Shown here: positions 19,329-23,295 of the stretch, in pieces
Position numbering within the stretch: position 1 is the stretch's first letter
Layout: the number at the start of each line of letters is the position of its first letter
Assembly (NCBI GenBank): GCA_020891255.1
Contig: BQFW01000013.1
Location: 2,232,001-2,296,000 of the forward strand
Reading direction: 5' to 3'
From: Entomortierella parvispora E1425
Lineage: Eukaryota; Fungi; Mortierellomycota
DNA length: 64,000 bases
Translations under genes and position numbers: made by a program
Notes under the pieces: model-generated
Databases searched by the model: none
What the model was told of the DNA's origin: nothing
Seen by the model: the letters and a program-made list of their open reading frames with translations, nothing else

Positions 19329-22300
19329 ATGAGGCTTCAAATCTCTCTCTATATTGCGATCGCCTCTACCATCGCGCTGACCGCCAGTTTGACTGAAGCG
19401 AAGGGCGATCAGCCTGACACTGTCGCTGCTGAGGCTAACCTTAGCCAGGACACTACTGCTGACCTTGCTGATCTCAACAACCAACTGTGGAAGAACAAGC
19501 AACATCATCAGAGGAGGTATAGGTCCAAGGTACAAGATCGTGAAAATTTGATACAGCTTGAGAAAACTGTTAGGGTTGATCAGGACAACTAACCTTTTGT
19601 TCTTTCTTCAGCGAAAGATCAACCCTGAGTATACCCCTGGATCCACCGGATTCCCTGGACCCCCTGGACCCCCTGGACCCCCTGGACCCCCTGGACCCCC
19701 CGGACCGCCTGGACCCCCCGGAATCCCCGGAGCCCCCGGAACCCCCGGAATTCCTGGACCCCCCGGAACCCCGGGAATTCCTGGACCCCCCGGAAGCCCC
19801 GGAACCTCTGGACGCGATGGACGTGATGGATCCGCTGGCCCTGCAGGCCCTGCAGGCCCCGCAGGAGCCATGGGAGTAGCTGGTCCCGCTGGAGCTAATG
19901 GTGTCGCTGGTCCCGCCGGAGCCAATGGGGCCAATGGAGCCAATGGCGCTGAGGGAGTTGCTGGCCCTGCTGGATCCTCTGGAGCCAACGGAGTCGCTGG
20001 AGCCAATGGAGCCAATGGCGCTGAGGGAGTTGCTGGCCCCGCTGGATCCTCTGGGGCCAACGGAGTCGCTGGAGTTGAGGGCGTTGCTGGCCCCGCAGGA
20101 TCCTCTGGAGTCGCTGGAGTTGAGGGCGTTGCTGGCCCCGCAGGATCCTCTGGAGTGTCTGGAGTCGAGGGCGTTGCTGGCCCTGCAGGATCTTCTGGTG
20201 CCAGTGGGGTCGCCGGCCCTGCTGGATCCGCTGGTGCCAATGGAGTTGCTGGAGTTGAGGGAGTTGCTGGCCCCGCTGGATCTTCTGGTGCCAACGGAGT
20301 TGCTGGAGTTGAGGGAGTTGCTGGCCCCGCTGGAGCCTATGGAACCAATGGAGTTGCTGGAGTTGAGGGAGTTGCTGGTCCTGCAGGATCCTCTGGTGCC
20401 AATGGCGTTGCTGGAGTTGAAGGAGTTGCTGGCCCCGCTGGATCCTCTGGAGCCAACGGAGTCGCTGGAGTTGAGGGAGTTGCTGGCCCCGCTGGAGCCT
20501 TTGGTGCCAATGGCGTTGCTGGAGTTGAAGGAGTTGCTGGTCCCGCAGGAGCCTCTGGTGCCAACGGAGTCGCTGGAGTTGAAGGAGTTGCTGGCCCCGC
20601 TGGAGCCTCTGGTGCCAATGGCGTTGCTGGAGTTGAGGGAGTTGCTGGTCCTGCAGGATCCTCTGGTGCCAATGGCGTTGCTGGAGTTGAAGGAGTTGCT
20701 GGTCCCGCTGGAGCCTCTGGTGCCAACGGAGTCGCTGGAGTTGAAGGGGTTGCTGGCCCCACTGGAGCCTCTGGTGCCAACGGAGTCGCTGGAGTTGAAG
20801 GAGTTGCTGGCCCCGCTGGAGCCTCTGGCGCCAACGGAGTTGCTGGAGTTGAGGGAGTTGCTGGCCCCGCTGGTGCCTCTGGTGCCAATGGCGTTGCTGG
20901 AGTTGAGGGAGTTGCTGGCCCCGCAGGATCCTCTGGTGCCAATGGCGTTGCTGGAGTTGAAGGAGTTGCTGGTCCCGCAGGAGCCTCTGGCGCCAACGGA
21001 GTCGCTGGCCCTGCTGGATCCGCTGGTGCCAATGGAGTTGCTGGAGTTGAGGGAGTTGCTGGCCCTGCAGGATCCTCTGGTGCCAACGGAGTTGCTGGAG
21101 TTGAAGGAGTTGCTGGCCCCGCTGGATCTTCTGGTGCCAATGGCGTTGCTGGAGTTGAAGGAGTTGCTGGCCCCGCTGGAGCCTCTGGTGCCAACGGAGT
21201 CGCTGGAGTTGAGGGAGTTGCTGGCCCTGCAGGATCCTCTGGAGTTGCTGGAGTTGAAGGAGTTGCTGGCCCCGCAGGATCCTCTGGAGTTGCTGGAGTT
21301 GAAGGAGTTGCTGGCCCCGCAGGATCCTCTGGAGTTGCTGGAGTTGAAGGAGTTGCTGGCCCCGCAGGATCCTCTGGAGTTGCTGGAGTTGAAGGAGTTG
21401 CTGGTCCCGCAGGAGCCTCTGGCGCCAACGGAGTCGCTGGCCCTGCTGGATCCGCTGGTGCCAATGGCGTTGCTGGAGTTGAGGGAGTTGCTGGTCCCGC
21501 TGGATCCTCTGGTGCCAATGGAGTCGCTGGAGTTGAGGGAGTTGCTGGCCCTGCTGGATCTGCCGGAGCCGCTGGAGCCGCTGGGGTTGAGGGAGTTGCT
21601 GGCCCTGCTGGATCTGCCGGAGCCGCTGGAGCCGCTGGAGTTGAGGGAGTTGCTGGCCCTGCTGGATCTGCCGGAGCCGCTGGAGCCGCTGGAGTTGAGG
21701 GAGTTGCTGGTCCCGCTGGAGCCGCTGGAGCCGCTGGAGTTGAAGGAGTTGCTGGCCCTGCTGGATCTGCCGGAGCCGCTGGAGCCGCTGGAGTTGAGGG
21801 AGTTGCTGGTCCCGCTGGAGAGGCTGGAGCCGCTGGAGTTGAAGGAGTTGCTGGCCCTGCTGGATCTGCCGGAGCCGCTGGAGCCGCTGGAGTTGAGGGA
21901 GTTGCTGGTCCCGCTGGAGAGGCTGGAGCCGCTGGAGCCGCTGGAGTTGAGGGAGTTGCTGGTCCCGCTGGAGCCGCTGGAGCCGCTGGAGTTGAAGGAG
22001 TTGCTGGCCCTGCTGGATCTGCCGGAGCCGCTGGAGCCGCTGGAGTTGAGGGAGTTGCTGGTCCCGCTGGAGAGGCTGGAGCCGCTGGAGTTGAAGGAGT
22101 TGCTGGCCCTGCTGGATCTGCCGGAGCCGCTGGAGCCGCTGGAGTTGAGGGAGTTGCTGGTCCCGCTGGAGAGGCTGGAGCCGCTGGAGCCGCTGGAGTT
22201 GAAGGAGTTGCTGGCCCTGCTGGATCTGCCGGAGCCGCTGGAGCCGCTGGAGTTGAGGGAGTTGCTGGTCCCGCTGGAGAGGCTGGAGCCGCCGGAGCCG

Positions 22301-23295
22301 CTGGAGCTGCTGGAGTCGCTGGAGCCAGTGGAGTTGCTGGGCCCGCTGGAGAGGCTGGAGCTGCTGGAGCTGCTGGAGCTGCTGGAGTCGCTGGAGCCAG
22401 CGGAGTTGCTGGCCCCGCTGGAGAGGCTGGAGCCGCTGGAGCCGCTGGAGTTGAGGGAGTTGCTGGTCCCGCTGGAGAGGCTGGAGCCGCTGGGGCCGCT
22501 GGAGCTGCTGGAGTCGCTGGAGCCAGTGGAGTTGCTGGGCCCGCTGGAGAGGCTGGAGCCGCTGGAGCCGCTGGAGCCGCTGGAGCTGCTGGAGTCGCTG
22601 GAGCCAGTGGAGTTGCTGGTCCCGCTGGAGACGCTGGAGCCGCTGGAGCCGCTGGAGTTGAGGGAGTTGCTGGTCCCGCTGGAGAGGCTGGAGCCGCTGG
22701 GGCCGCTGGAGCTGCTGGAGTCGCTGGAGCCAGTGGAGTTGCTGGTCCCGCTGGAGAGGCTGGAGCCGCTGGAGCCGCTGGAGCTGCTGGAGTCGCTGGA
22801 GCCAGTGGAGTTGCTGGTCCCGCTGGAGACGCTGGAGCCGCTGGGGCCGCTGGAGCTGCTGGAGTCGCTGGAGCCAGCGGAGTTGCTGGCCCCGCTGGAG
22901 ATGCTGGAGCTGCTGGAGCCGCTGGAGTCGCTGGGGCCGCTGGGGCCGCTGGAGTTGCTGGGCCTGCTGGAGACGCTGGAGCTGCTGGGGCCGCTGGAGT
23001 CGCTGGAGCCAATGGAGTTGCTGGGCCCGCTGGAGACGCTGGAGCTGCTGGGGCCGCTGGAGTCGCTGGAGCCAATGGAGTTGCTGGGCCCGCTGGAGAC
23101 GCTGGAGCTGCTGGAGTCGGTGGAGCCAACGGAGTCGCTGGAATTGAGGGAGCCAACGGAACTGCTGGGCCTGTTGTAACCGCTGGTGCCAATGGGGGAG
23201 CTGCGGGCGCTGCTGGTGCCTCTGGTGCCTCTGTAGCCAAGGCACTCGCTGGCACTGCTGGATCCGTTGGTGCCGATGGAGTTGCTACAGTTTAG
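19329..23295 (+). CDS. Secreted collagen-like protein: signal peptide, basic pro-region, 393 contiguous Gly-X-Y triplets; exons 19329-19529 and 19612-23295
   Basis: Hydrophobic N-terminus [24 protein letters not shown]. Phase-0 GT-AG intron 19530-19611 with a ctaac branch site. Gly at every third residue from 19639 to 23175. Confidence 0.9.

Follow-up and report, generated by a model that had tools for sequence, protein, structure and literature searches.

A putative two-exon gene of Entomortierella parvispora for a secreted, cysteine-free collagen-like protein with an unbroken array of 393 Gly-X-Y triplets

MCL1-type collagen-like coat proteins were reportedly described by Wang and St Leger in 2006 from Metarhizium and other ascomycetes, and Aspergillus is said, by Tuntevski and collaborators in 2013, to contain collagen-like (acl) genes with length-polymorphic Gly-X-Y regions. 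The helices of animal fibrillar collagens comprise about 338 to 343 triplets (about 338 in type I) with about 20% imino acids and many Lys and Arg residues, trimerise by means of a C-propeptide and zip from the C- to the N-terminus. Collagen-like proteins from bacteria, including Streptococcus Scl1/2, Bacillus BclA, Burkholderia Bucl and Pasteuria Pcl, have arrays of variable length that grow by amplification in tandem; on the surface they serve as filaments or adhesins. As described, the MCL1 type consists of a Cys-containing N-terminal domain, 22-52 triplets with glycosylation sites and a separate 3' domain (PMC6350332). Triple helices are usually stabilised by imino acids, hydroxyproline or charge pairs (PMC13138384). 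No report of collagen-like proteins from Mortierellaceae was found in the literature searched. Here we describe a locus at 19329-23295 (+) of a 64,000-nucleotide stretch of E. parvispora E1425 DNA (hereafter the window; contig 13, BQFW01000013.1, positions 2232001-2296000), which appears to encode a secreted, very acidic, cysteine-free collagen-like protein from a real-looking two-exon gene. The genome searched comprises 38.9 Mb in 20 contigs. Exons 1 and 2 were searched separately; their joined translation was used for local residue counts only.

A local script counted exactly 393 unbroken Gly-X-Y triplets at 19639-23175, opening with GST-GFP and seven consecutive GPP, in precise agreement with the initial annotation, which had also claimed that the run exceeds the helix of type I collagen, as the count does when set against about 338. 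Exon 2 matched Pfam Collagen (PF01391) with an E-value of 8.7e-171 and 554 bits against a cut-off of 27.2, and no other Pfam family. Since in addition a 13-residue unit motif was matched 25 times in the window and not once in 100 shuffles, chance can be excluded as an explanation of the array. The X position is chiefly occupied by Val, Ala or Pro and the Y position chiefly by Ala, followed by Glu, Ser and Asn; glycine is encoded by GGA (281), GGC (53), GGT (41) and GGG (18). When split at a recurring GVAGPAG the array falls into four parts, a Pro-rich head and zones 1 to 3. The head (19639..19872, +), a candidate nucleation block of 26 triplets that includes (GPP)x7, contains 37% Pro versus 5.5% in the remaining 367 triplets, which hold 63 Asp/Glu and no Lys/Arg. 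The complete array has two Arg, neither of them in a dibasic pair, and no Lys, so the earlier description as Pro-poor and almost devoid of basic residues was apt. Glu and Asp are spaced every 15-24 residues along the array. The exon 2 product has a mass of 95.9 kDa, a pI of 4.05 and a single N-x-T sequon, and neither it nor the rest of the precursor contains Cys. Given a triple-helix rise of 0.286 nm per residue, the array would measure about 337 nm if it folds as such.

By description, the gene resembles the acl genes of Aspergillus in being a fungal gene with a Gly-X-Y repeat region. It resembles those of the vertebrate fibrillar collagens (types I-III) in its very long uninterrupted Gly-X-Y run with a Pro-rich block at one end, and removal of a propeptide as in these collagens would be possible; unlike them it is Pro-poor, has 393 triplets and nearly no basic residues, and lacks both a C-propeptide and Cys. 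Any nucleation would need to begin at the N-terminus. As in the bacterial proteins, the array would work in the absence of hydroxyproline. Unlike these, the gene is eukaryotic, carries a fungal leader and is interrupted by a spliceosomal intron, and the protein has no wall anchor or C-terminal globular domain; moreover, whereas the arrays of bacteria owe their stability to polar residues and charge pairs (PMC13138384), the charged residues found here are essentially acidic only. A surface-coat role would be the most natural analogy with MCL1-type proteins, which, as summarised elsewhere (PMC6350332, PMC7341153), are likewise fungal, predicted to be secreted, hydrophilic and negatively charged, with a Gly-X-Y array. 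None of the three elements of the MCL1 layout as given in PMC6350332, a Cys-containing N-terminal domain, 22-52 triplets and a C-terminal domain or wall anchoring, was recognised: the E. parvispora protein lacks Cys, has a different leader judging by the domain description, and ends in a degenerate repeat with no hydrophobic end, no separate C-domain and no visible anchor, and the gene is from Mucoromycota rather than Ascomycota. Nor are the repeats separated by dibasic sites, as in Kex2-processed repeat proteins, since dibasic residues occur only in a cluster before the array. Deviating from the MCL1, Kex2-repeat and bacterial layouts, the protein would appear to be a departure within the known fungal collagen-like proteins.

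The zones differ in the apparent age of their copies. Zone 1 (19873..21537, +) consists of 18-residue units with 15- and 12-residue variants and seems to contain the oldest copies: nine units with identical protein sequence have 8 distinct DNA sequences that differ at a mean of 4.5 of 54 bases (about 8%). Zone 2 (21538..22257, +), made of 18/15-residue units, seems to hold the youngest, with only 2 DNA variants among eight units of identical protein sequence and a stretch of about 278 nt that is repeated exactly at a period of 252 nt, starting from 21673 and 21925. Zone 3 (22258..23175, +) has units of 21-27 residues. The unit list hence contains the three successive repeat types that had been distinguished before. 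Because zone 1 has diverged at about 8% of its bases and zone 2 has an exact 278-nt repeat, the amplifications appear to be of different ages. Tandem Repeats Finder reports a 54-nt period as well as higher-order periods with 75-89% matches, every length variant of the units preserves the Gly phase, and the DNA of the array is unique within the genome. It is supported, at the level of sequence, that the array was built by stepwise in-phase tandem amplification, the mode of growth proposed in the initial annotation.

Substitution patterns were compared among 32 units of 54 nt. In the Gly-X-Y frame pS amounts to 0.293 and pN to 0.087, which is a ratio of 0.30 (0.16 for neighbouring units), while the ratio is 1.3-1.9 in the other two sense frames and in two of the antisense frames. 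The first two positions of Gly codons show 0 variant cells out of 384, versus a fraction of 0.099 at the first two positions of X and Y codons and 0.198 at the third position of Gly codons. Fisher's test gives p 1e-14, a value that overstates the difference since cells are not independent, though its direction is clear. As Gly codons are invariant at positions 1 and 2 while position 3 varies freely, the Gly at every third residue is maintained and not merely copied, and the Gly-X-Y reading is likely to be under purifying selection. Codon-usage scoring against nine long open reading frames (ORFs) of the window did not separate the frames (0.046 vs 0.048).

Exon 1 (19329-19529, +) has 67 codons, is opened by an ATG at 19329 with an A at -3, and encodes a signal peptide followed by an acidic pro-segment with a basic cluster at its end. 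A TATA-like box, TATATAAACC (19171..19180, +), lies about 150 nt upstream of the ATG. In the predicted signal peptide (19329..19400, +; 24 residues) a basic n-region precedes a hydrophobic core of 17 residues, with T-E-A ahead of the likely cleavage point, as judged from the hydrophobicity profile and the sequence; AlphaFold2 predicts a helix at residues 2-25 and the region is conserved in four relatives, all of which is in line with the signal peptide proposed earlier. The pro-segment (19401..19529, +) is followed by a predicted spliceosomal intron of 82 nt and phase 0 (19530..19611, +) with donor GTACAA, branch ACTAAC, a pyrimidine tract and acceptor CAG. A second in-frame AG is found 6 nt downstream of the acceptor. 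Exon 2 (19612-23295, +) has 1227 codons and a TAG stop at 23293-23295. The stretch RRYRSKRK, which had been put forward as a possible Kex2 site, arises only upon splicing, as the intron falls at its K|RK junction. The basic stretch is hence confirmed for the spliced product, whereas a specific Kex2 site is possible only, since the stretch aligns with a His/Lys-rich linker of paralogues. Intron retention would yield a secreted peptide of 87 residues; the frame that reads through the intron shows no coding-type pattern.

A phmmer search of 1.84 billion proteins with exon 1 gave three real matches, with E-values of 5e-18, 1e-7 and 2e-6. The best, from Podila verticillata (KAF9367696.1), is recorded as a "partial hypothetical protein"; it comprises 80 residues and is 68% identical over exon 1. 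Its contig of 1208 bp contains an identical TATATAAACC box and retains both the branch point and the donor GTACAAGATCG; past the acceptor the contig reads GPP-GPP-GP..., entering the GPP repeats at the equivalent point, and ends three triplets into the array. P. verticillata thus holds an orthologue of the collagen gene. The lack of full-length relatives in databases is probably explained by the short-read Podila assembly breaking at the array. Identity between the two species is 90% for the intron, 83% for exon 1 and 82% upstream, the gap between intron and exon not being significant (8 differences in 80 nt). The first AG of Podila coincides with the second AG of E. parvispora, and reading through the Podila intron is also open up to the branch point.

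The other two matches are from Gryganskiella cystojenkinii (P0244) and a metagenome contig (P0245), and a paralogue in the E. parvispora genome itself was found with an E-value of 1e-11 (L033; contig 11, 1046295-1049474, ORF 442-1707 (-), 421 codons). Across the five sequences the residues I9-A12, A16-T18, E23-A24, D27, D30, A47-D48, L53-W54-K55, K57 and H59 of the leader are invariant. The collagen gene has the signal peptide and pro-segment by which this family is recognised. In L033, P0244 and P0245 a linker rich in His and Lys comes after the leader, and then a short motif containing Cys and repeats that are Gly-rich but not collagen, namely GGDPNSN or GKPxPT; in L033 the linker leads to a KKCKTQTVVVFAKCTS motif, after which GGDPNSN/GGGNNSN recurs about 40 times. 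No Pfam family was found in L033, and no similarity was found between the 3' flank of the collagen gene and the paralogue loci. Homology with the paralogues ends at the exon 1 boundary, so that leader and collagen part lie on either side of the intron, and since the leader is common to non-collagen repeat proteins the collagen exon sits behind a Mortierellaceae-specific secretion leader. These three sequences would make up a hitherto undescribed Mortierellaceae family of secreted repeat proteins.

We consider it fairly probable that, taken as a whole, this is a real two-exon nuclear Mortierellaceae gene for a secreted collagen-like protein with N-terminal nucleation and a tandem-grown array on a family leader. 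The signal peptide would carry the chain into the endoplasmic reticulum, where three chains could register at their N-termini via a helical pro-segment and/or the 26-triplet Pro-rich block with (GPP)7. The initial annotation had found no visible trimerisation domain, which holds for Pfam; to this can be added the conserved 43-residue pro-segment, whose residues 29-66 AlphaFold2 predicts to be helical, at low confidence (pLDDT 51-73), from the alignment of the five leader sequences. Being conserved, predicted helical and placed directly before (GPP)7, this segment is a candidate nucleation element. The helix would then zip from N to C through 367 Ala/Val-rich triplets, giving a rod of about 340 nm, regularly acidic, with essentially no basic residues and no cysteine. 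A Kex2-type protease may cut off the pro-segment at the basic cluster. There being no visible anchor signal, the rod would either be set free or stay attached by non-covalent contacts, and by analogy with MCL1 (PMC7341153) it could serve as a matrix fibre or a coat of the surface, hydrophilic and negatively charged; the initial annotation had proposed an extracellular fibre, adhesive or masking coat. The array would have grown by repeated in-phase tandem duplications of different ages, its exon being attached to a pre-existing family leader.

With Gly at every third residue over 393 consecutive triplets the protein has the repeat pattern of the structural class of collagens; several other observations weigh against the above reading. 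Beyond the head there is neither a high imino acid content nor any compensating charge pairs, and because Pro amounts to 5.5% and opposite-charge pairs are absent after the first 26 triplets, the usual rules leave the stability of a triple helix in doubt. A 2OG-FeII_Oxy_3 domain occurs at five loci of the genome, and the two intact ORFs of prolyl-hydroxylase type that were inspected lack a signal peptide. In the paralogues the same leader precedes repeats other than collagen, so it is not specific to collagen; GTACAA is an unusual donor; and the 3' end appears decayed, with open frames running past the stop. Some of this would also fit a real gene with a secreted product whose array forms no collagen triple helix. 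Like the other members of the leader family, the product would then be a low-complexity protein rich in Gly/Ala/Val, either disordered or similar to silk or elastin, and the period of three would serve another structure or stem from a 9-nt slippage unit. Such a protein would account for the scarcity of Pro in 367 of the 393 triplets, for the lack there of Lys/Arg to pair with Glu/Asp, for the frequent Asn in Y, for the 7-residue Gly-rich GGDPNSN or GKPxPT repeats behind the same leader in the paralogues, and for the fact that no secreted prolyl hydroxylase was identified (two intact ORFs inspected). It does not explain why not one of 393 consecutive first positions is non-Gly although the third positions of Gly codons vary like other silent sites, why all length variants keep the Gly phase, or why an N-terminal (GPP)7 that resembles a nucleation site has its position conserved in Podila; we consider it unlikely, if to be taken seriously.

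The exact repeats of up to about 278 nt inside the array, the degenerate out-of-frame repeats and other open frames past the stop, and a surrounding region rich in transposons and NLR genes might also suggest that there is no functional gene of such length, either since array length or frame is an artefact of assembly or polishing or since the gene is silent or decaying. To this we assign a small probability: the 3.7-kb frame is intact and its synonymous excess indicates long-term constraint, most units have diverged enough for unique placement, the orthologous 5' end is kept in Podila, and the E1425 assembly of 20 contigs is based on x409 Nanopore coverage with Illumina polishing (PMC8759367), the reads of which would span 3.5 kb. 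The chance that horizontal transfer brought in the collagen exon, from a bacterium (e.g. Burkholderia-related endobacteria) or a giant virus, and that it was fused to a fungal leader through the intron seems slight. Paralogue homology does stop at the exon 1 boundary, the best database matches of the array are bacterial or metagenomic collagen-like proteins, and the presumed host strain harbours Mycoavidus. These matches are, however, generic collagen with only 30-55% identity, and a search for the 13-residue unit motif, whatever its codons, had no match in 2.9 million viral contigs or in the genomes of 185,579 bacterial and archaeal species, with a pattern that does work, as its 25 sites in the window demonstrate; the leader family, moreover, already has Gly-rich repeats as a possible source of the period of three. 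That the opposite strand codes, for an Ala/Pro/Thr-rich mucin-like protein with Pro at every third residue, can be given hardly any credence. The antisense frame at 20337-23255 is open for 972 codons and its pN/pS of 0.28 is as low as that of the Gly-X-Y frame, from which the selection test does not separate it, a further point against our preferred reading; the low value is explained by the wobble positions that both frames share. Yet this frame contains neither a Met nor a signal peptide, follows immediately on a stop and is interrupted by another although the repeats run about 700 nt further. On the sense strand, by contrast, a promoter box, ATG, signal peptide and intron are present, and each of them is conserved in Podila.

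Returning to the secreted collagen-like protein, a bolder idea, which we offer tentatively and with considerable doubt, is that early-diverging fungi have built a true triple-helical collagen independently, from a secreted Gly-rich repeat family by in-phase amplification behind the shared leader and not by animal inheritance or bacterial transfer; its helix would be longer than that of any fibrillar collagen, Pro-poor and devoid of the usual stabilisers. This would represent an independent origin of collagen and provide a natural test of the minimal imino acid content of a very long helix. If the array folds, the usual stability rules would be challenged, and a cysteine-free, lysine-free, recombinant-friendly collagen scaffold would be at hand. 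Compared with MCL1-type proteins, which are short (22-52 triplets) and ascomycete, the 393-triplet array of a Mortierellaceae species would extend the fungal range. It exceeds not only the fibrillar collagen helix but also the longest unbroken run, 262 triplets, among the 240 best database matches. Word searches with exon 2, using either the whole sequence or its first 360 residues, gave only generic, mainly bacterial or metagenomic collagen matches with at most 55% identity over substantial alignments, and no named fungal protein was among the 240 matches listed in either search. Scans of JGI metagenomes with the leader alignment and with a conserved 24-mer of the 5' region gave no matches. 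Short-read assemblies hide such genes, as exemplified by the Podila orthologue, left as an 80-residue partial protein on a contig broken at the array.

The array is followed by a C-terminal tail of 39 residues (23176..23292, +), a degenerate Gly-X-Y sequence with phase breaks and no hydrophobic GPI-type end. Decayed out-of-frame repeat DNA follows the stop (23296..23370, +), and AATAAA at 23558..23563 (+) is a candidate polyadenylation signal by consensus match. Past the TAG, frame 0 is open for 87 codons and another frame for 157 codons, and no Pfam family was found in these frames. They could reflect a recent nonsense or frameshift mutation that truncated the gene, a polishing error, an unseen 3' intron or chance. 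Beyond the TAG frame 0 (23296-23648) holds a His-rich stretch and ends at a double TAA just before the AATAAA.

Upstream, a 456-residue ORF at 13541-14911 (-) with no Pfam family has two database homologues only, in Actinomortierella wolfii (50%) and Mortierella alpina (43%), and appears to be a Mortierellaceae-restricted orphan. The neighbours of these homologues are not syntenic with the window, and no Gly-X-Y run occurs within 10 kb of them in either species. An intact-looking Tc1/mariner transposase ORF (DDE_3 and HTH_Tnp_Tc3_2) is situated at 29882-30892, 6.6 kb downstream of the collagen gene, and beyond it are HEAT-repeat NLR-like ORFs; the collagen gene therefore lies in a variable, transposon-rich region.

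The present gene is the only long collagen found in the genome. Its other Pfam Collagen matches were rejected as simple-sequence or contig-end repeats, apart from one stretch of 10 triplets, which is the only other plausible collagen-like coding stretch (L018 2025-2114; contig 6, about 2291500). It belongs to a small Cys-rich protein with a hydrophobic N-terminus, possibly a signal peptide, and its 10 Gly-X-Y triplets begin with GTPGTPGHPGHP. Spurious Pfam Collagen matches at L013 1691-1888, L015 2049-2201 and L016 1699-1833 stem from a single kind of 18-nt repeat block, of GRDGCK type and flanked by similar sequence, within a few kb of the ends of contigs 12, 1 and 3, which probably represents a shared subtelomeric element.

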